NCBI RefSeq assembly: GCF_964204645.1
Contig: NC_134034.1
Location: forward strand, 5,678,914 to 5,742,913
From: Tubulanus polymorphus
Lineage: Eukaryota > Animalia > Nemertea
Direction of reading: 5' to 3'
DNA: 64,000 nt
This document shows, piece by piece, positions 2,623-24,671 of the stretch. Numbering within the stretch: the stretch's first letter is position 1; each line of letters begins with the position of its first letter. A program made the position numbers and the translations under genes. The notes under the pieces were generated by a model that had not been told where the DNA came from, did not search any database, and worked only from the letters and a program-made list of their open reading frames with translations.

Positions 2623-4023
2623 TTAATAGTTATCCATAGCAATTTTCGCTATTCTTTCGCGTGCTTTAATTGCCGCCTTGCGATTCGGTCGTTCGTTGCT
2701 TGGCGGCGATTCAATTCGTTCGATTTCTTTAGTTTCGAAGCAAGACTTATCCACGTTTAGCTCCAGTGGATATAGTTTCCGAATAGCTCGGCAGGTGGTT
2801 CCGTGCACAGTTTTTACGTGAGCCGCTCGGATATAGCCATCCTCCGAACTCTTCAGTACAGATTTGATAATACCTAATTTCCAGTGGTGACGTGGTATAT
2901 CTTTATCATGTATTATAACCACGTCACCAGTTTTCACGGTGTTAGCTTTCGCGCCATTTTTCTTAATTTCGTTTGCGTGACGTTCACGCAGTACTGCGAG
3001 GTACTCATTTTTGAAGCGCTTCTGAAAGTGTCGAATTATTTGCGCTCGGTGAAACGCCATTTTTTGAAGAGACTGGCTAACTTTACCTTGACCGAATTCT
3101 GGGTCGAAAATTTCGGTCTCATCGATACTTTCACACGGAATCAATTCGACTTCGCGACCGAACAGTAACGAGTTCGGTGTTATGGGTTTGATATCATCGA
3201 TCTCTGACGGGATGACGGTTAAGGGGCGGTTATTTATCGTAGCTTGTATTTCTTTAATCAAGGTTTGTAATTCGTCTAATGATACTTGTGCATGCGCTAG
3301 AACCTTTTTAATAGCGGTTTTGACGATGCCGATGCATCTTTCATGCACCCCCGCCATCCATGGCGCTTGGACCGGAGTATATTTAAACTTCATTCTTTTA
3401 TCCGCGTAGATTTTTTGTGCGTTGTCGGATGAAGCGATTTCATACAGACGTTTTATCTCAGCCTCCCCCGCGATGAAGGTTTTCGCGTTGTCCGAGTATA
3501 TAATATTCGGAGCCGAATACGAACTACAGAAGCATCGGAATGCCCTGATGTAAGAATCAACGGTTGCGTCTGTAACTATCTCGAGATGAATTGCTCGAGT
3601 CGTACAGCATGTGAAAAGACAAATATAAACTTTATTTTCGCCGCGGACGTATAAATGGCCAGTAAAGTCGATGGCCGTAGCGGTGAATGGTTTTAGCTCA
3701 TTGAGCCTGAAACTGGGTAATGGTGGTGGTGCTAGATATGGGCGACCGTACAATCTTTTGCATGTCACGCATTTCCTCAGTATTTTCTTTGCTAGAGATC
3801 TAAGAGATGTGATCCAGAAACGTTTGCGGACTTTGTTGACTGTCATTCCTGTGCCGTAGTGAAATACCGATTCGTGTGCATCCCTGACAATTAATGACGC
3901 TAGGTACGACTGGTTTGGGATGAGAATGGGTTCTTTCCGTGCTTGGGTTATTTCAGCATTTCTGAGCCTGCCAGCACATCTCAATGTTCCTTCCGCATTG
4001 CGATAGACCCCTAATTGTCGCAC
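2623..4023 (-). CDS. BEL/Pao integrase part of the polyprotein (HHCC zinc finger, DDE core, C-terminal DUF5641-like region)
   Basis: HESVFH...CVTC; catalytic IDFTG, SDNAKTF, HERCIG; NNRPLT; R...KLYPLE tail. Confidence 0.93.
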   Translation of the reverse strand: MRQLGVYRNAEGTLRCAGRLRNAEITQARKEPILIPNQSYLASLIVRDAHESVFHYGTGMTVNKVRKRFWITSLRSLAKKILRKCVTCKRLYGRPYLAPPPLPSFRLNELKPFTATAIDFTGHLYVRGENKVYICLFTCCTTRAIHLEIVTDATVDSYIRAFRCFCSSYSAPNIIYSDNAKTFIAGEAEIKRLYEIASSDNAQKIYADKRMKFKYTPVQAPWMAGVHERCIGIVKTAIKKVLAHAQVSLDELQTLIKEIQATINNRPLTVIPSEIDDIKPITPNSLLFGREVELIPCESIDETEIFDPEFGQGKVSQSLQKMAFHRAQIIRHFQKRFKNEYLAVLRERHANEIKKNGAKANTVKTGDVVIIHDKDIPRHHWKLGIIKSVLKSSEDGYIRAAHVKTVHGTTCRAIRKLYPLELNVDKSCFETKEIERIESPPSNERPNRKAAIKARERIAKIAMDNY

Positions 4024-4083
4024 TATAGTCGGACACTTTCGATGTCTTGTGGGTGAAGTAAGAGTGGACTTCCGGATATTCCT

Positions 4084-7000
4084 TCAGTTGGACACTTTGT
4101 ATCCAGATGCCTCTCGTATATCGTCTGCTGAAATGATGTTTTTAGATTTTAACCCTTTTCTGAAGGCTCGTTTGACCAACGCGGTGACCCGTAATAGTCT
4201 TCGATAGTCAGTGAAGTCCTGAACCTGTATGATCTGGTCTATACCAGTAATTTCCGCCTGACCGGTCCTTGTCTGGAATTCATTTTCAATCTCTAGGCTA
4301 GCGACGAGTATGACCGAGGTGTCTGGTTGGTCGTCGGGAGGTGGTTCGTCTTGGTTTTCCATCCACTCTGGGCCAGTAATCCACATTGATCTCATGAGCT
4401 CGTCATATGTGGCCCCTCTCGAAAGGATGTCTGCTGGATTTAGCTTCGACGGTACGTGCTTCCACTCATGCACATTGCAGAGCTGTTTAATCGCTGTAAC
4501 TCGATTTTTTACGAACACTTTAAGTTCCTTTTCTGATTTCAACCAGTACAGGGCTACAGCTGAGTCTGTGAAATAATGATTGTCAATGCCTGCGTATTCC
4601 TTCTCGTAGATTCTTCTGATTGAATCGGCGTATTTCGCTGCCATAACCATGCCCTCTAATTCAAGTTTTGGGACTGTCCACCCGGCCTTTGCTTTAGAGA
4701 TGACCTTGTTTTTCGAGCCTATGAGACGTATTTTGTTGCCTTGCTTTCCATATATAACACAGCCTACCGCACTATTTGGGGCTGCGTCGCAAAATACCAT
4801 AAGTTTAATCGGTGATTCGTTGTCGAATCCGAGCCACCTCGGAAATTCGATCTGATGAGTCTGATTTAGATTGTTGTGAATGATGCTCCATTCCTTTAGC
4901 TCGCTTTGGTCTAATTCTTGATCCCACTCTTTGGACGACTGCCAGAGTTTGTTGATAAACACCTTAGCAGTAACTGTAACTGGAGCAACCAGACCTAGTG
5001 GGTCAAATACTGCCGCTGTGCGTGATGCGACCTTTCGCTTTGTTATGGTGGCTTCAGTCTGTGTCATTGATTTCCTGGCTATAGTTATGATGTCATTATC
5101 TGCATTCCAGGTCATTCCTAGCAGTGGCACTGATGTTGTATCTCTCACATGGATATCTCGGTTGGTTGCCTTTTTCATTAGGAGTTGAGAGTTAGATGCC
5201 CACTGCCTCAGTCTGAAGTTACCCCGTTGCATTATCTCCATAGCTTCTTCGAAGTATTCAGATACTTGGTCTTCTTTGCTTAATGTACTGAGTAGATTGT
5301 CAACGTAGAGTTTCATACCCATGTCCTGTGCCACCCACGAGTCTCGGTGGGCGTCAAAGTGTTTCGACAGGACAGCCGCCAGCGTGAATGGGCTCGCCGT
5401 AGATCCAAATATGACGGTATTATGTTGGTATGGGACGATGCCCTTCGATGGATCGTTATCCTTATACCAAAGGAAACTTACGTATCGTCTATCTTTCTCC
5501 GCTAGTTGAACTGACAAAAAGGCTCGGGCGATGTCGGCTGACATAGCGACTACACCCGTTCTGAACTGCATGATCAGTGAGGGCAGATCCACCAGCATAT
5601 TGGGCCCTTGGTATAAACAGTCGTTCAGTGAGGGTGAACCTGCGCTCGCGTCAAATACTATTCTCAGTGGAGTTGTTGGGCTGTCTTTCATGATGAAGAA
5701 GTGTGGGATGTAATAACAACCCTCTTCCAACAAGGCTTGGTCTGGGTTTGGGATTTCCGAGACAGTATTCTTCTCAATATGCTCTTGCATCACCTTGGTG
5801 TATGCGCCCATAAGTTCAAGGCGTTGTAGACGATGAGTTACTTGTTTTAATCTGTACCTACTCTGGGTTAGATTGTTTTGAAGTTCTGAGTGGTCTTCCT
5901 TCCATGGTAGCGGTGCGTAGTAGCAGTTATCCTTGTACTGGATTTTCTTTTTATAATCCTCTAAGAATATATTATCCTCTATGCATCCTTGATCTTCGAA
6001 ATGGCCAGGGAATTCGGCGGTATTATTCTGCAGGAATTCGTTGAGTATCGTGTTACTAAATTTTTGGTTAGCATCCCCAATCCCTAGCATATCAGAAACT
6101 GCGGTAAGCGTGAATGCATGTGGATTGTGGTCATCTTTGTACAACGGACCATAAACAAAACAACCGAGATTAGAAAATTGGATGATTGGCCCACCGGGGA
6201 TATTTTCCGTACGGTTTTCGAGGAATAAATATAGGTGACCGCAACCGATTAATATATCCACGGTGAATAACTCAGCTTCGAAATTATCCGCGAGGTGGTC
6301 TAATCTAGATATTTCCGGAAACTCAAGACATTCGGCCCATCGTTTGAGATATATGGGCTTAACGATTTCATTCGATATGGCGACATCGATATGTATCATA
6401 CCTTCGGTGGTAACGATGCCTACGGAAGCGATGTCATACACGCGTTTTGAAGTATGACCCCCAAAACCATTTACGGTCAACGATCGTTGGTAGCGCGGTT
6501 TTAACCTGAGAGCGGTGGCTATATCCTTGCGGATGTAACTGAGCATGGAACCGTGGTCGAGAAGGAGATTTGCATTTTTAAACTTATGACCATTATTTTC
6601 CAGATTAATTTGGCCCGTTTCCAACAAAACTATATCGCTGGGAGCAACGGCAGCCTGAATCGCATTGCTTTCACAAGTATATTCCGATTGATTTTCGCAT
6701 GTATTTTCCGACTGATTTTCGCATGTATATTCCGTTGTTTGATTCGACAAACTTTCACATGTTTCGCTCACAATCTCGTGATTGTGGCCTCGATTCGCAT
6801 TTGGTTCGATTAATCCAATGTTTGTGTTTTTGTTTTGTATCGCTGCGCATCCAGTCGTAGTAGTTAAATTATCTCTGTGTAGACTTGTGTGGTGTTGCCT
6901 GTTGCACTTCATACATCTACCCGAATTCCGGAAATTTATTACTGGATGGTTCGGTTTCAGGCAATTAATACACAGTTGCCGCTCTTCAGTTTTCGCTTTT

Positions 7001-7368
7001 CGATTTTCGAGATTTAGATGACATCTGGTAGGTCCATGTTCTCCGTCGCAGAATGGACACTGGTATCTTCGCTGGTTTCCGACAAAGGATGTAGTTGTCA
7101 TTCTCGGTCGCTGTTGGTTAGACGATGTTGATGTGATTTCTCCAATGTTTTCAAGTTGTTCTTCGAATTTCTTAATAAATTTATCGAGTTCAAAATCACC
7201 TGCTTGGCCACATGTGCCCATCTTTTCGAGAAAGACTCTCGGGATTTTCTTTTCCATTGATGTGACAATAAATGAAGCACATGCGTTGACATCTACGCCC
7301 AGGTGTTGTAAAGATCGAATGTTGGCGTTGGCTTGATTGACGAATTGTGATAGAGACGCAAAGTTCAT
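4084..7368 (-). CDS. BEL/Pao gag C-terminus, aspartic protease, reverse transcriptase and RNase H
   Basis: Three zinc knuckles (CPFC..H....C; CINC....H, with the last Cys replaced by Phe; CMKC...HHTSLH). Protease LLDHGS; RT LRIVFDAS, ADIARAF, FGSTASPF, YVDN; RNase H VFCDAA, PKLEL, FTDS, NPADILSRG. Confidence 0.95.
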   Translation of the reverse strand: MNFASLSQFVNQANANIRSLQHLGVDVNACASFIVTSMEKKIPRVFLEKMGTCGQAGDFELDKFIKKFEEQLENIGEITSTSSNQQRPRMTTTSFVGNQRRYQCPFCDGEHGPTRCHLNLENRKAKTEERQLCINCLKPNHPVINFRNSGRCMKCNRQHHTSLHRDNLTTTTGCAAIQNKNTNIGLIEPNANRGHNHEIVSETCESLSNQTTEYTCENQSENTCENQSEYTCESNAIQAAVAPSDIVLLETGQINLENNGHKFKNANLLLDHGSMLSYIRKDIATALRLKPRYQRSLTVNGFGGHTSKRVYDIASVGIVTTEGMIHIDVAISNEIVKPIYLKRWAECLEFPEISRLDHLADNFEAELFTVDILIGCGHLYLFLENRTENIPGGPIIQFSNLGCFVYGPLYKDDHNPHAFTLTAVSDMLGIGDANQKFSNTILNEFLQNNTAEFPGHFEDQGCIEDNIFLEDYKKKIQYKDNCYYAPLPWKEDHSELQNNLTQSRYRLKQVTHRLQRLELMGAYTKVMQEHIEKNTVSEIPNPDQALLEEGCYYIPHFFIMKDSPTTPLRIVFDASAGSPSLNDCLYQGPNMLVDLPSLIMQFRTGVVAMSADIARAFLSVQLAEKDRRYVSFLWYKDNDPSKGIVPYQHNTVIFGSTASPFTLAAVLSKHFDAHRDSWVAQDMGMKLYVDNLLSTLSKEDQVSEYFEEAMEIMQRGNFRLRQWASNSQLLMKKATNRDIHVRDTTSVPLLGMTWNADNDIITIARKSMTQTEATITKRKVASRTAAVFDPLGLVAPVTVTAKVFINKLWQSSKEWDQELDQSELKEWSIIHNNLNQTHQIEFPRWLGFDNESPIKLMVFCDAAPNSAVGCVIYGKQGNKIRLIGSKNKVISKAKAGWTVPKLELEGMVMAAKYADSIRRIYEKEYAGIDNHYFTDSAVALYWLKSEKELKVFVKNRVTAIKQLCNVHEWKHVPSKLNPADILSRGATYDELMRSMWITGPEWMENQDEPPPDDQPDTSVILVASLEIENEFQTRTGQAEITGIDQIIQVQDFTDYRRLLRVTALVKRAFRKGLKSKNIISADDIREASGYKVSN

Positions 7369-7386
7369 AGCCGCTGGTGGTAATTC

Positions 7387-8028
7387 TTAAAGGTTGTTTA
7401 CGTGAGCGCGAACTATTTTACGTTTCTGTCCGAATCGATCCGTGAGTATTGATATTAAGGAGTCCAAATTAGAACCGGACGCGTGGATACCCTTAACGGC
7501 ATCAAGTGCGTTACCTCTCAGCTGCCCGATTATGTAGTTAAATTTAGTGATTTGTGAGAATTTACCCATCAATACGTCAGCTTGTATTGTCTCCCAAAAT
7601 GATGTCCAATCAGTATAATTCCCGCTGAACGTTGGTAATTTCAGTTTGGGTAAGTGCCCGGTCTTCTGGGTGTCGGTATCCTGGATCTGCTCAGGCTTGG
7701 TGTTCTGATGATTACGATTTTCGAGGTACTTTTTTATTTTCAAGAGTCTTATGCGTTCCTGGCTGCGTCTTTCATTCGAATCTTTGATTTCTTTTTCGAA
7801 TTCATCGTCGTCTTTTCGCATTTCTTGGATTCTTTCTGCTAATGTTTCTCTGGATTCGTGGACCAGTCGCATCTCGTCTAATCGTGCTTCGATTTCGGTT
7901 GCATCGTCTTCTGCGATATTGACTTCTTGCATAAGTATTAGGATTCGCTCGTAGTTCGTATCAAATGTGTCGATATCCGCATGTCTTCGTTTTCGGAGCT
8001 GGTCCAGCGTTTCTTTTTCTTTTGGCAT
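7387..8028 (-). CDS. BEL/Pao gag N-terminus (DUF1759-like)
   Basis: LPKLKLPTFSGNYTDWTSFWE...KFNY...L.G.A; same frame as the downstream ORF and separated from it by one TAA. Confidence 0.9.
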   Translation of the reverse strand: MPKEKETLDQLRKRRHADIDTFDTNYERILILMQEVNIAEDDATEIEARLDEMRLVHESRETLAERIQEMRKDDDEFEKEIKDSNERRSQERIRLLKIKKYLENRNHQNTKPEQIQDTDTQKTGHLPKLKLPTFSGNYTDWTSFWETIQADVLMGKFSQITKFNYIIGQLRGNALDAVKGIHASGSNLDSLISILTDRFGQKRKIVRAHVNNL

Positions 8029-18491: not shown

Positions 18492-18786
18492 GACAAGCTC
18501 ATTCCAATAACGCCAAACCAATTAATTTATGGAGAAAGGGTTGTCCCGAGCCGTGGAGCCACCATACAACTTCCAATATACACAAATTTGCGTATATTGG
18601 AAACCAAGCTTCTCACATGCGCAAGCGAAGTACAGTACTAAGTACCGCAATATAAATACGGTGTGCGGATTACACCGAACTCAGCGGATAGAGACGACCG
18701 GCACACCGTGTCCCAAATGTACAAGATGATGAAATTCTAATTTATTTTAAATATCCGGATTGTTTTAAATGAATTAAAGCAAAAAG

Positions 18787-21700
18787 ATGTTTTCTACGTT
18801 GTCAGTTGACTCACCGATATCAGAAAGCAACGAACATAACGACGATTCAGATGTGTTTAACGACACGGGTAAGAAAGTAACTCATAAAACAACAACTATG
18901 CTATTTCAACCTTATGTACACAGCGACAATAAAACGAATAGCGAATTTTCGTGTTGCATTTCCTATATACATTACAATATACATTTCCTATGTAAATTAC
19001 AATCCCTTTTCGGGATCTCGATTTTATAGACCAGCAAAGCTCTGAAGAATCGGACTGTGAGACGGATCCACCAACTACCGAACCGAAAAAAGGTGTGTAA
19101 CTGAAAATTAAGCCGAAATATTTTTCGCGTTATGGCCTATGTTGATCACAGGCGATATATAAATGGATTTTTTTAATAATCAATGATTTCATAGACGAGC
19201 GAAACGATAAAAAAGCCAGCTGTGAATCGGACTGTGAGACGGATCCACCAACTACCGAACCGAAAAAAGGAGTGTAACTGAAAATTAAGCCGAAATATTT
19301 TTCGCGTTATGGCCTATGTTGATCACAGGCGATATATAAATGGATTTTTTTAATAATCAATGATTTCATAGACGAGCGAAACGATAAAAAAGCCAGCTGT
19401 GAATCGGACTGTGAGACGGATCCACCAACTACCGAACCGAAAAAAGGTGTGTAACTGAAAATTAAGCCAAAATATTTTTCGCGTTATGGCCTATGTTGAT
19501 CACAGGCGATATATATATGGATTTTTTTAATTCTCAATGATTTCATAGACGAGCGAAACGATAAAAAAGCCAGCTGTGAATCGGACTGTGAGACGGATCC
19601 ACCAACTACCGAACCGAAAAAAGGTGTGTAACTGAAAATAAGCCGAAATATTTTTCGCGTTATGGCCTATGTTGATCACAGGCGATGTATATATGGATTT
19701 TTTAATTCTCAATGATTTCATAGACGAGCGAAACGATAAAAAAGCCGGCTGTGAATCGGACTGTGATACGGATCCACCAACTACCGAACCGAAAAAAGGT
19801 ATGTAACTGAAAATTAAGCCGAAATATTTTTCGCGTTATGGCCTATGCTGATCACAGGCGATATATATATAGGCCTATATGGATTTTTTAATTCTCAATG
19901 ATTTCATAGACGAGCGAAACGATAAAAAAGCCAGCTGTGAATCGGACTGTGAGACGGATCCAACACAAACAAAAGACCGTAAGGGACAATTCCAAGGGCA
20001 TGGACTGGGTCAATTGCGCTTCTGAAATTACAAGCAAAATCAAATCTGGTTTCAATTGCAGGCGATCAATTTCCAAATTCGAAGAAGAATTCGAAAAGAA
20101 AATCCACCGGCCATGGACTACCGACGTTCTCTCGACCAAAAAACAGATCGGAAGCAAACGATCAGGTTAGCAAAAGATCGGAATTATATCTAATGTATCT
20201 AATGAAATGGCATTATACCTTCATTATCTAGTTTCTGTAACATGTGAACACTTCCTCCAGGTCACCTTGATATGGAATAGATCATATGAAGTCGAGGTTC
20301 CAGTGGCCAAGGTAGGAACAGTTATTGTGACGGATGTTTCTCTCAGGACGTTACGTAATAAGATGTGGTTGGATGATGCTGTAAGTTTCGTGCAAGTGTT
20401 ATCCCTCAGATATTTCTATGTTACACTTTCATTTCAAAGTAATGAACTAATATGCTGCATGCATCTGAAATACTGATATCTCAATAAATTTGTATGAACA
20501 TAAATCGGGATCATTTGGAAGTTAGTCACTAAAGAGCCAGTTCATATTTTTCGTATTCTTTTGAAACGATAGGTCATAGTGGCGTCTTTGTTTATGATAT
20601 GCAAAAAGGCTGCAGAAAACGATCCCCCGCGTGATTGGCTTTTGTTAGACAGCCATCTTATAACATGTATAATAACTGGAAATGAAATGTCGTACAAAAA
20701 TCATCTCATGAAAAAGGTATCTATTATTAACGTTCTCTGTATAACAATCGGAATATTTTATTAGTCGATAGCGCTGTCTGCAATTGACTTTTACAAAGTT
20801 GAATGAAATTGTGTTAATCAAATGAATCTTTACTATTCTCAGGAAGTCTTTGCTACAAAAGATGCAGTTGTCGGGACTTACAACAAAAACCGAAGTCATT
20901 GGATTCTGGTGGTAAGTAAATGTATACCCATCTCCTAGATGTATTGTATGTACGTGTACGTACATGTATTTATGTACAAATTTATGTATTTATGTACGTA
21001 GGTTATATGGCCCAGAGTACGGAGTTTTATTTATCTTGACCCAATGGGCTACAATGATGATGAAGCCAATGCAGCAAAGGATAATTTCAGGTACGTCTAG
21101 TCGATTTCAATCGTAGATTAGTTCACCAATTGTCAATCAAAATAAGTTTCATGGGCATGTGACATATACACGAGCATTCAACTGTTCACACGGGTGCCAA
21201 ATGGGCCCGAGCCTGTTTGCCCTGAAATGATTGCGTTTGAATTGCAACTGGCACCAGAAATGATCCACTTCGCTTTGTTTGAGCATTGTTTAGAATCAGT
21301 ATTAGTGAATGGTTTACGTGTGAACGCGCTCTCTTATGATCTGTGCCAAATTGGCCCGAGCCAAATCATCTCCGTGTGATCGCAGCTATAATGTCCATTC
21401 ATACATTGCTTCCATCTCTTTTTAGGCGATATCTCCAATTTAGAGAACGCCGACTAGGAAGGCCTGACCTTGGCAAAATACGGTGGACAGTTGGGTCAAT
21501 CGATCACCCCAAACAGACAGATGGACACAACTGCGGTGTTTATACTCTGCATGTAGGTATTGTAGAAATTGTTGAGATTATTTTAGTAGGGTCGGCCCAA
21601 TGTTGTTTAACGGTCTTCCTCTTTTAGTTTGCCAAATGTTTGATGCAAAAGGGATTCATTGCGAAAGAGCGATTTAATCCCGCAGCTGAGAGAAAGCGCA

Positions 21701-22098
21701 TTGCTGCAGACCTGCTACTACATTCAGAAGGTAAAGATGGAAATATACTTAAGAATTTTCAGTAGAAACGAGTATGTTCATTTTTTTTTTAAATAAGTAG
21801 TACCCTAGTAAGAATTTTAAAACGTAATATTACAGTTGATATGACGAATGACTGTTCCCAATGTTGTACTCGAGGAGAAAATGGAGTGTGGGTAAGAATC
21901 TATCATGTTCAATCGCATATCAGTATGAATTGCATTCTAAATAATGCACTATCATTTTCATTATTGTTACAGATTGGATGCAATCACTGCTACAGGTGGT
22001 ACCATAGTATCTGTATCAAACTCCACGGCGAGGAATTGGAACAAGCCATTAGAGAAGACTGGTGCTGCAGCAACTGCATTAATTTTTATACGCATTGA
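18787..22098 (+). CDS. Spliced Ulp1/SENP-family (peptidase C48) protease with C-terminal PHD finger, about 458 aa
   Basis: Exons 18787-18868, 19030-19092, 19372-19446, 19549-19623, 19724-19798, 19910-19978, 20062-20165, 20261-20380, 20573-20716, 20843-20911, 21002-21090, 21426-21552, 21628-21730, 21836-21891, 21973-22098. All introns are GT-AG, phases are compatible and there are no stops. Motifs WLDDAVI, SHWILVVI, YLDPMG, PKQTDGHNCGVY; C4HC3 finger CSQC..WIGCNHC.RWYH..C...WCCSNC. The start codon and N-terminal exons are less certain than the protease and PHD exons. Confidence 0.85.
19046..19962 (+). repeat. About 177-bp tandem repeat (about 5 units), each unit an intron plus a 75-nt exon
   Basis: Exon starts at 19195, 19372, 19549, 19724 and 19910; units are nearly identical. 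Confidence 0.95.
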
Positions 22099-23823
22099 AC
22101 AGCGTCGTTCTACATTTTGTGAGGCACAATTAGATTTATATTGGATCTCGTGATTCAATGGCGGAAAAATTATATAGTTCTTAGATTGATGATGGTACGG
22201 AATAACTATTGTTGCATAACTAAAATTAGCTGAATAACTAACAGGAGGGCTAACATGCATTTAGTTTTAGTAAATTTCTTAATTGAATTTTTACAAAATA
22301 TAATAATACCGGATACCTACATTAGTAAAAGAAAAATTTATAGATAGGCCTTCATACAAGTGTGTGTCGTCAAAGCAATATTTCACATTTCAGAGAATTA
22401 GTTTCGATTTTCATCGTTGTTGTATACCTTATATATAACTTATTTCGTCATTTGATTTCCTCTATCAAATTATTGACAAGCTGATATCTTGGTCTCGTAA
22501 TTTAAATTTGTAATCAGTTCATTCGATAACCACCGGGTCTTGTGATTTTGCGTGATCATGGTAGGCTATCAAAAAAGAATTGTACAGGCCGGAAGGTACC
22601 AATTAGGCCTATTTTAGCCTTGTATTTCATATACGTTTATGTTTGTTATAGTAATTTTGTCGAGCATTCTAAGCATTAATCTTACGTACGATACTCCTGA
22701 ACGGTACCAGTATCTGGCCTACTCGCCTCCAGGCGTCGTAGAGGCGAGTGACGCCCAAGTTTTATGAGAATCTAATCGTTAACTTTTAAACGCCACTATA
22801 ACGGCATATAAAATCTGGTTTTGTATATATAATTTCACAATCTTTGAAAGGAAATGTATCCAAAGTTTGGTGTTTGCTCGACGTGATATAAATAGCTTTT
22901 AAATCACTCTTGTTTTTATGTTATTTACATGTTTCTTTAAATGTTTGAGTTCCTTTTATGTGAATAAATGAAGTGATTACCATTGACCTTACGCCTTAGC
23001 TTTCAATGATTGAATCTTTGAAGTGCCCACGTAACATTCCAAACTAATTGGCTGCTCTGCGACGGGTTAGTTCTAACCTGGCATGGTATGTCATATGGCG
23101 CAGCGAATCAACTATTTTTACTGAATTATAGATACACAGTATAAATATCAACCAATCCGCACTTATTCAATGTGCTTGCTGACTGTGGAGACGACAAAAG
23201 GAGGCCGCTAGAATGATTTGTCAAAAAGGCACAATTAGAAAGAAAAAACAAGAATATCAACAACAAATAATCTAATTTCACTTGCGAATTTGAAAAAAAA
23301 TTTTTTAATTGCATCATTTAGAAAATAAGCAAGAAATGATTAAATTTTGATTGAATGGTTGGTACTTCGCATGCCACGCCAAATGCCATAGGCCTATATG
23401 CCAAATGTTTAGGACTAACCTCGCTAAGGTAACCTTTGCTTGTTCATGTCGTTGCTGCAAGATTCGTACCGGGAATCTAATTATAAACATAAGTCTTGTC
23501 GTTGATGGACATATTTGGGGAATTTTCAAACATGCGACAAGTTCGCCATCTATCGAACATATCTTGCGATCCCACACTTGTTCAGGATATTAGATGAATA
23601 TCGGTATATCGTGATACTCAACACGTCCTTGCGTATAACGGAAATCACAAATACGCAAATTTGCGTATATTGGAAGTTGTATGGTGGCTCCGCGGCTCGG
23701 GACAACTATTATTCAATTTATGGGCATGACCTAGAATTGGCAGCTTACAGTGATTCAGCGGGGGATTTTGACCCCACGTACGCGGGAAAAGTACAACTCG
23801 AAAAGATGCAGTTCCACTGCTCC

Positions 23824-24671
23824 TAGTCAGTAACCTGTCTGTGGTTTAGTTTCACAATCGGATATTTTCACAAACCACAGTCAGGAATGGGAAGGTCATT
23901 TTTGTATGAAATCTTCGTCAGCCAATTTGACTGACGAGTAATTTGCCTGGCATTTCATTGTCTCTTAAGATATCCGTCTAATTTTTGTAGTAATCGACGC
24001 ACAACAGATTCGTAGTTTGTCTGATACCTATAACACCTCACCTGACGATCTTAATCCATGTGCAAATCGGCCGTGAAGTGAGAGTAAATTTCCGTCGGGT
24101 CAACAGCTGCCATTTTGAAAATTACTGGAGGTGCTGGCACCTGTGGACTGAGGCCACGACAACAGCACAAACTAACGAAGCGAAACGACGAAATTGAAAA
24201 AAATTAAGAAATCAACACTTATTCACATTTTTCTTTTACCAGAATTTATTATTTCTTTATTTATTATGGAAAACACGAAGATTTGAAATATAAGTTGGAA
24301 AACCATCAAAAATAAAAATTGTCGTTTCGTCTTGGAAGTTTTATATAAATCCTTGTAGGTCCCCTTGTCTTATCATGCCACATGTGCAATACAGAGTAAT
24401 GGTGGCCAATGGCGAAATTGGTGGAGAAATTAATTAATTTCTCAAAATAATGTTGATTAACCACTCGAAACATACATAAAATTTGATTATTTCGAAAGGT
24501 ACCTGTGTTAGTTTGTGAATTAAGCCATTAATTGTGGACTGAAGTGAATAGAAAGTATATTTTTGAAGTGTTACTTTTTTCAACCGTGTTTTGGTCCTTG
24601 TCATCCCTAACGTTGGTATAAGCCCATCCGATTATAAAAAAGCTTACCACCAACGATTAGGTAACTAACTA
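23824..24671. mobile_element. 848-bp non-autonomous TIR element with 9-bp TSD
   Basis: TSD CACTGCTCC at 23815-23823 and 24672-24680; TIR TAGTCAGTAACCT versus TAGTTAGTTACCT. Confidence 0.85.

Follow-up and report, generated by a model that had tools for sequence, protein, structure and literature searches.

For two decades, Ulp1-like proteases have been turning up on transposons, among them Mutator, Ginger and CACTA, and we know of no function demonstrated for them. A SUMO-protease domain is also part of the Zisupton transposases of fish. What is already known covers Ulp1 on transposons, non-autonomous derivatives, and Ulp1 beside a PHD finger in Mutator and Ginger1. Bao, Kapitonov & Jurka (2010, PMC2836005) aligned the Ulp1 and PHD domains of these transposases and gave 'Ulp1, PHD' as the domains of Ginger1-9_HM. 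It also covers ULP genes on plant Mutator-like elements (MULEs), reported for the KAONASHI elements (KI-MULEs) of Arabidopsis and for melon, rice and grapevine (PMC2528002; Hoen et al. 2006, cited there). Here we analyse a 64,000-nucleotide stretch of DNA from the nemertean Tubulanus polymorphus (the window; C10:5678914-5742913 in a source assembly of 268 Mb and 77 contigs) that holds a less usual arrangement, an animal element with terminal inverted repeats (TIRs) whose sole gene is a complete and open Ulp1-PHD unit.

Judged from sequence comparison, two diverged families have conserved this Ulp1-PHD unit in its protein sequence, and it has a signal of purifying selection. We put even chances on the element being a non-autonomous cut-and-paste transposon, probably of the Mutator lineage, with a conserved accessory gene. 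The assignment to MULEs and the expression, splicing, protease activity, substrate and any benefit of the gene to the element are inferred.

Boundaries, copies and mobility of the element

The element was delimited by a repeat search, which found two inverted arms (18529-18595 and 23651-23717) of 67 nt that are 90% complementary. Once the flanking duplication is removed from these arms, 64-nt TIRs remain, identical at 58 of 64 positions. The two ends are asymmetric, beginning GAGAA... and GAATA..., with the terminal motifs GAGAAAGGGTTGTCCCGAGCC and GAATAATAGTTGTCCCGAGCC, and a short palindrome inside the 5′ TIR (about 18571-18602) gives a minus-strand self-match. The 8-bp target-site duplication was read directly on both sides (Table 1).

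Searching the genome with the TIRs yielded two further copies, on contigs C4 and C9, so that the family consists of three copies, of which only the one in the window is intact. The C4 copy has its own perfect 8-bp duplication, GCCATGTT, unlike the AATTTATG of the window copy. Because the two insertions each have a different perfect duplication of this length, the 8-bp duplication is not a chance repeat, and two independent duplications together with the near-identity of the copies point to recent cut-and-paste movement. Thus, the 64-bp TIRs and the clean 8-bp duplication claimed in a preliminary description of this DNA are both there, joined by a second insertion with an 8-bp duplication of its own, and the mobility that it proposed is borne out by two copies, 99.1-99.7% identical, at different sites. 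With TIRs, duplications at more than one site, near-identical copies and no transposase, the element has the generic features of a non-autonomous TIR transposon. No paralogous empty site was found for the window insertion; the left-flank paralogues end 25 bp before the insertion point. On the right, about 100 nt of unique flank lead into a repeat with more than 1000 copies; the short repeat at 23813-23870 in this flank has more than 1000 first-look candidates in the genome.

Both other copies are broken. The C4 copy retains the 5′ TIR and the leader to position 18749 as well as all from 21199 on, where homology begins again with its inner breakpoint in a high-copy repeat of intron 12. In place of exons 1-12 it has 5.8 kb made up of satellite, TA microsatellite and Penelope-like GIY-YIG fragments, the 5′ TIR is split by a 2.8-kb insertion, and a 444-bp stretch (22287-22730) is missing. 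The replacing DNA includes, at C4:12652688-12658515, about 1.7 kb of a satellite with a 42-nt period and more than one open frame, along with a long TA microsatellite and a GIY-YIG fragment of a Penelope-like element. The C9 copy is truncated at the equivalent of window position 19904, has lost 21538-21753 and 22284-22504, and is interrupted by a stop codon in exon 13 as well as by nested insertions.

The preliminary description had called the element transposase-less, with an open Ulp1-like and PHD gene as its only recognisable cargo, and both statements hold. A scan of the element for open reading frames found none longer than 106 aa besides the gene, and tblastn with MULE DDE, SWIM and zinc-finger segments left no trace in the element, in the whole window or at the loci of the other copies. 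The copy count sought by the genome search with the TIRs was thereby obtained, whereas neither an autonomous partner with matching ends nor, through one, a superfamily emerged from it. Longer copies in which the exons are part of a transposase fusion were likewise not found for this three-copy family.

The Ulp1-PHD gene and its predicted protein

We modelled the gene as 16 candidate exons running from an ATG at 18787 to a TGA at 22096-22098, with 1452 nt encoding 483 codons and the stop. The frame has no internal stop, all split codons are sense codons and all acceptors are AG. The donors are GT in every exon except exon 3 (19195-19269), which has GA. This exon is 75 nt long, so that skipping it preserves the frame and leaves 15 exons with GT-AG introns. 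The 15-exon open frame of the preliminary description thus stands as an open frame, but its claim of GT-AG sites throughout holds only if exon 3 is skipped from the 16 candidates. The candidate promoter motif TATAAATA at 18651 and the in-frame ATG that it also listed are both present.

The predicted protein begins with acidic, Pro/Thr-rich repeats, continues through a basic linker into a C48-like (Ulp1-like) domain and ends in a PHD finger. The N-terminal repeat, of 25 residues, is encoded by the exons of a tandem array of 5.1 units that are 96% alike, each unit of 177 bp comprising a 75-nt phase-1 exon and a 102-nt intron. In the third unit of the array the GT donor has been lost and now reads GA. 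The KKNSKRK stretch in the basic linker is possibly a nuclear localisation signal.

Domain searches were run exon by exon. The complete C48 catalytic set reported in the preliminary description could be read directly from the sequence: the His in SHW (20897-20899, exon 11), the Asp in LDP (21038-21040, within YLDP of exon 12), and the Gln (21514-21516) and Cys (21532-21534) in QTDGHNCG (exon 13), in the order H...D...Q...C and with motifs typical of the family. When exon 13 is aligned with yeast Ulp1 (chain 1euv_A), the Gln and Cys of the two coincide. Five C48 open reading frames of the same genome that pass Pfam were combined into a local profile, which matches exons 9, 11, 12 and 13 collinearly, at profile positions 18-33, 80-97, 103-116 and 145-164, where the WLxD, HW, D and Q...C motifs lie; exon 13 alone is significant (E=1.6e-5 among 13 exons). 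With tblastn, the same five frames found only the Cys motif in the gene (E of about 0.001-0.002).

Three of the four PDB matches of exon 13 are C48 proteases (Ulp1 at the top, SENP2 and a ULP_PROTEASE chain; E 0.08-0.3), all three aligned at the Gln...Cys motif, but no PDB match reached significance, whether the query was exon 13, exon 9 or a small exon profile. In the ESM-Atlas, 27 of 30 feature matches of exon 13 are Peptidase_C48 clusters, and exon 10 returned no usable match. The 94-aa open frame that surrounds exon 13 had no match in a protein homologue search, within a length window that left out full-length relatives. Taken together, exons 9-14 very likely encode a C48 (Ulp1/SENP) domain, short of formal proof.

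The PHD finger is complete, as first described. Exon 16 on its own passes the Pfam PHD model PF00628 (24.4 bits against a cut-off of 24; profile positions 14-47), and exon 15 supplies the first CxxC, so that the full C4HC3 order of Cys pair, Cys pair, His, Cys and Cys pair can be read. Searched exon by exon, Pfam thus returned the PHD finger but no PF02902 (Peptidase_C48) match for any single exon.

Three public sequencing runs hold the sequence, their kind unrecorded, and because their contigs continue through the introns we take all three to be genomic DNA. Three of the joints listed in them (21537>21754, 22283>22505 and 22285>22731) could be assigned to indels of the other copies, and the remaining ones fall within the high-copy repeat of intron 12. 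A contig from a second sample, covering 21508-22617, has no gap at 21537-21754, where the C9 copy has one, yet it shows the C9-type 221-bp deletion at 22283-22505. This combination is a variant absent from the assembly, which suggests that copies or alleles are polymorphic between individuals.

Table 1. Positions of the element, its gene, its copies and related features. Coordinates without a contig prefix are window positions.
Feature	Coordinates	Strand	Details
Element proper	18532-23714		5.2 kb
Left target-site duplication	18524-18531		AATTTATG; equals 23715-23722
Right target-site duplication	23715-23722		AATTTATG
5′ TIR	18532-18595	+	64 nt; begins GAGAAAGGGTTGTCCC
3′ TIR	23651-23714	-	reverse complement begins GAATAATAGTTGTCCC
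Candidate TATA box	18651-18658	+	TATAAATA; 136 nt upstream of ATG
Exon 1	18787-18868	+	ATG, 27 codons and 1 nt; GT donor
Exons 2-7	19030-19978	+	all phase 1; 63, 75 or 69 nt; inside tandem array
Exon 8	20062-20165	+	basic linker with KKNSKRK stretch
Exons 9-14	20261-21730	+	C48 (Ulp1-like) domain
Exon 9	20261-20380	+	
Exon 10	20573-20716	+	
Exon 11	20843-20911	+	His
Exon 12	21002-21090	+	Asp
Intron-12 short repeat	21130-21400		very high copy; contig depth thousands to about 30,000
Exon 13	21426-21552	+	Gln, Cys
Exon 14	21628-21730	+	
Exon 15	21836-21891	+	C4HC3 PHD finger, with exon 16
Exon 16	21973-22098	+	C4HC3 PHD finger; includes stop
Non-coding 3′ region	22099-23650		1.55 kb
C4 copy	C4:12650616-12661507		same asymmetric ends; 99.1-99.7% identical where aligned
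C9 copy	C9:8122025-8137712		86-95% identical by segment, mostly 90-95%
Autonomous MULE	C5:12857898-12867607		9.7 kb; TIRs of about 100 bp
1.7-kb derivative of the C5 MULE	C6:18359713-18361435		9-bp duplication CTCAAAAAG
Degraded sister relic	C2:17941133-17942434		exons 12 and 16 at 58-65% amino-acid identity
BEL/Pao retroelement	2623-8028	-	three long open frames

Relatives, selection and superfamily

A genome search with exon 13 returned about twenty copies at 40-52% amino-acid identity, mostly of one family. An autonomous MULE on contig C5 has the gene order Ulp1-like exons, ZSWIM3_N, MULE DDE, SWIM, PHD and a final PHD-half exon, the domains from ZSWIM3_N to PHD being Pfam assignments. Its 5′ Ulp1 exons are 41-60% identical to those of the element and its last PHD-half exon is 38-39% identical to exon 16. 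Equal DDE frames of 471 aa at C5:13156024 and C12:9938272 suggest that there are three full copies of the C5 type. Full-length copies are outnumbered by short derivatives, in which an internal deletion of about 7.4 kb fuses the Ulp1 exons to the last PHD exon; at least 10 of these are indicated by pairs of exon-13 and exon-16 matches lying 0.4-0.8 kb apart. A further relative, a degraded relic on contig C2, has retained no similarity at the DNA level and runs directly from C48 to the end of the PHD finger within 1.3 kb, a span that leaves no room for a DDE domain. A terminus related to those of the element, GAATAGGGGTTGGCTTGAGCC, lies on the expected side of this relic, 9.3 kb off.

Exon boundaries are common to the window gene, the C5 MULE family and the C2 relic: one after HW(I/V)LV with gt following, one where an exon starts with (Y)LDP, and one after CG(V/I)xx(H/L), again with gt following. 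These shared boundaries indicate that the gene is a paralogue of the modules borne by transposons, and the intron positions that it has in common with them rule out a retro-copied or freshly captured host gene. Animal SENPs have, to our knowledge, no PHD finger, which also speaks against capture from the host. To judge from the C2 relic, the Ulp1-PHD layout predates the window family.

The preliminary description had allowed that the element could be a deletion derivative that kept only its accessory gene. That account now fits better, given the homologous modules and the derivatives of the C5 MULE, although no longer copy of the element's own family, with the exons as the end of a transposase fusion, was found. 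A rival account would make the element inert debris, left by deletion or rearrangement of a larger Ulp1...DDE...PHD transposon, with a frame still open merely through youth and a useless protein. Internal deletions of C5-type MULEs did give rise to at least 10 copies of a 1.7-kb Ulp1-PHD element, and since both modules adjoin the element ends such a layout arises easily by deletion. The family also looks like one in decay, comprising three copies of which the 99% copy is without exons 1-12 and the 95% copy has a stop, deletions and nested insertions, and the public runs, being DNA, give no RNA support.

The coding sequence argues in the other direction. Over the exons that the window and C9 copies share, we counted 10 differences at 179 synonymous sites and 13 at 694 non-synonymous sites. 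The ratio of non-synonymous to synonymous substitution rates (dN/dS) from this comparison among copies, of the kind that had been proposed earlier, is 0.33. The synonymous excess is significant (binomial p=0.011), and divergence is 2.7% in exons and 3.8% in introns. On these counts the coding sequence is under purifying selection, and because one of the two branches is that of a dead copy, the live lineage is probably more constrained than 0.33 suggests. Inert debris sits poorly with this ratio (p of about 0.01) and with the C2 relic, whose direct Ulp1-PHD arrangement, including both PHD halves, predates about 40% protein divergence. An arrangement older than that divergence, with the non-coding DNA now unrecognisable, suggests that the gene was long kept as a unit. 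There is, in addition, no DDE remnant in the element, and its PHD finger is complete, unlike that of the 1.7-kb derivatives. We therefore regard debris as unlikely, while giving it appreciable weight.

The element most likely belongs to the Mutator lineage, to which we would assign about twice the weight of the other superfamilies that make 8-bp duplications. In favour of Mutator are the homologous Ulp1 and PHD exons with shared intron positions, the 64-nt TIRs and the 8-bp duplication; MULE target-site duplications are 8-11 bp (PMC6446971), and both the 8 bp and the long TIRs of the element come within what is known of MULEs. The abundance of MULEs in the genome, which has 56 MULE DDE matches, counts on the same side. 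As read from the sequence, it is solely the homology of the Ulp1 and PHD exons that ties the element to MULEs.

Membership of another 8-bp superfamily (Zisupton/KDZ, hAT or P), as a non-autonomous element carrying or having captured a Ulp1-PHD gene, seems to us distinctly improbable. In its favour are the duplications of exactly 8 bp at both insertions, the 9-bp duplications of the MULE family examined, the 8-bp duplications of Zisupton elements (PMC12730594) and the KDZ domains at 20 places in this genome. However, all KDZ matches are more than 90 kb away from the copies and the related termini, and no C48 match adjoins a KDZ match. Of the Ulp1 and PHD relatives assignable to an autonomous element, the nearest belong to a MULE and share intron positions with the gene. 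The 64-nt TIRs starting with GA are, moreover, unlike the termini of hAT and P elements, which are short. Ginger1 was considered and rejected: its members have 4-bp CCGG/CCGT duplications, TGTNR termini and a Gypsy-like integrase (PMC2836005), whereas the element has 8-bp duplications, termini that start GAGAA... and GAATA..., and no integrase.

Several results weigh against a Mutator-lineage transposon with a conserved accessory gene. As to the gene, no C48 exon taken singly matches Pfam PF02902, a genome-wide PF02902 scan missed the element locus, the dN/dS ratio rests on 23 substitutions, and none of the joints listed in the public runs equals a predicted intron, the runs being DNA where RNA support was sought. 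As to the family, it has only three copies, two of them dead. No autonomous partner was found in the 268-Mb assembly with the full TIR DNA and three degenerate terminal patterns, and a 22-nt degenerate terminal motif occurs 9 times, at the three copies and at four lone related termini. As to the superfamily, the element has no DDE, SWIM or zinc-finger remnant and shares TIRs with no DDE-bearing element, the C5-type MULE family has 9-bp duplications and TIRs unrelated to those of the element, and a maker of 8-bp duplications is present in the genome in the form of the 20 KDZ (PF18758) transposase domains.

The four lone termini (C2:11985398, C2:17931817, C9:3493523 and C5:13978296) belong to a sister family. 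Over roughly their first 30 nt they agree with the element ends (GAATA.GGGTTGGCTCGAGCCGCGGAGCC), after which they pass into a hairpin-like stretch rich in G/C. Near them, neither a partner end nor a DNA transposase or MULE match was found.

The surroundings of the element contain a BEL/Pao retroelement with three long open frames, encoding a DUF1759 gag-like protein of 212 aa, a protease-reverse transcriptase-Peptidase_A17 protein of 1093 aa and an integrase with DUF5641 of 465 aa, and it looks intact. The earlier observation that neighbouring transposon frames are broken is accurate for the immediate flanks but not for this retroelement, with its long open gag, pol and integrase. Elsewhere in the genome, at C4:26323813-26329086, a single intron-less frame of 1758 aa has Pfam matches to PHD (323-370), a USP/UCH deubiquitinase (381-690) and Peptidase_C48 (1577-1740), and so joins two different proteases of ubiquitin-like modifiers in one protein; a twin frame lies at C2:24206705.

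Possible roles and comparison with known systems

Under the reading that we prefer, a Mutator-lineage transposon with an accessory gene, the element would be mobilised in trans by a transposase encoded elsewhere. Its gene is a stand-alone paralogue of the N-terminal Ulp1-like C48 and C-terminal PHD modules of autonomous MULEs, here preceded by a disordered region of acidic repeats and by a basic linker. The product may be a nuclear protein drawn to chromatin by its PHD finger. Its targets, at copies of the element, could be chromatin, repair or transposase-associated proteins, from which it would strip SUMO or a related ubiquitin-like modifier. The same service is presumably rendered inside full-length transposases, and would be provided here by a separate protein, during transposition or transposon expression. 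As the full-length MULEs imply it, we consider this mechanism the simplest one.

A more specific role was suggested in the preliminary description, in which the element is a mobile counter-silencing module whose PHD-targeted deSUMOylase would strip SUMO from the heterochromatin machinery at transposon copies and so reactivate the element itself or an autonomous partner. The architecture, a chromatin reader joined to a C48 domain with a full catalytic set, is compatible with this, as is a coding sequence that appears to be under purifying selection. Anti-silencing factors of plant MULEs are known in VANC (PMC5735166, PMC10398659), some VANC genes are linked in a 2026 review to an Ulp1 domain acquired by capture (PMC13317346), and TET/JBP demethylases occur as cargo in fungal transposons (PMC12730594). 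However, two primary papers on VANC (PMC5735166, PMC10398659) do not mention Ulp1, and other roles have been suggested for the Ulp1 domains of transposons, among them action on repair or other factors during transposition, or on DNA-repair factors once it is over (PMC2836005). The family is, moreover, close to extinction: it has a single intact copy and no partner. An effective anti-silencer would not lead one to expect this, although the argument is a mild one. The idea is a legitimate one that stands, on our analysis, unsupported, and we consider such a module very unlikely. We are equally doubtful of a broader version, in which the stand-alone Ulp1-PHD genes on transposase-less TIR elements (the window family and the C2 relic) would form a persistent lineage of trans-acting, chromatin-targeted deSUMOylases that relieve SUMO-dependent silencing of transposons. 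If true, this lineage would be an animal counterpart of plant VANC anti-silencing with a different biochemistry.

The element is otherwise an ordinary genomic object, low in copy number, nearly extinct and non-autonomous. Because it separates the protease and PHD finger from a transposase, and because its gene is open and apparently under purifying selection, it offers a clean construct for the function of the module. With such a construct one could ask which modifier is cleaved, which chromatin mark the PHD finger reads and what effect there is on silencing or transposition. Fused and stand-alone forms could be compared, as the full-length MULEs of the same genome hold the two modules at opposite ends of the transposase gene.

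Among the closest known systems is the C5 MULE of the same genome with its derivatives, and no full-length parent of the element itself is known. These MULEs resemble the element in their Ulp1 and PHD exons, intron positions, long TIRs and transposase-less members that keep both modules. They differ in having ZSWIM3_N, MULE DDE and SWIM between Ulp1 and PHD, in their 9-bp duplications and in their unrelated TIRs, and the 1.7-kb derivatives keep half of the last PHD and have extra deletions, whereas the C48 and PHD of the element are complete. Ginger1 and Mutator transposases likewise have the same two domains side by side in an invertebrate transposon protein. In those proteins, however, the two domains form a tail at the C-terminus of a transposase, whereas the element has no transposase and has an 8-bp duplication and GA ends.

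Zisupton/KDZ elements are similar to the element in their 8-bp duplications (PMC12730594) and multi-exon genes (PMC9297572), and dissimilar in having a KDZ domain, which is absent in or near every copy. VANC of the Arabidopsis VANDAL MULEs offers the functional analogy behind the counter-silencing idea, being an accessory gene that acts on the epigenetic state of related copies (PMC5735166, PMC10398659). The VANC protein binds DNA in a sequence-specific manner and brings about a loss of DNA methylation, and the same papers mention no protease or PHD finger. The plant ULP-MULEs also carry a C48/ULP coding region inside a MULE, sometimes as a gene separate from the transposase (PMC2528002). They retain mudrA, their ULP is regarded as a captured host fragment, and no PHD finger is reported for them. 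KI-MULEs are without TIRs, whereas the animal element described here has them, together with a gene that is a paralogue of transposon modules.

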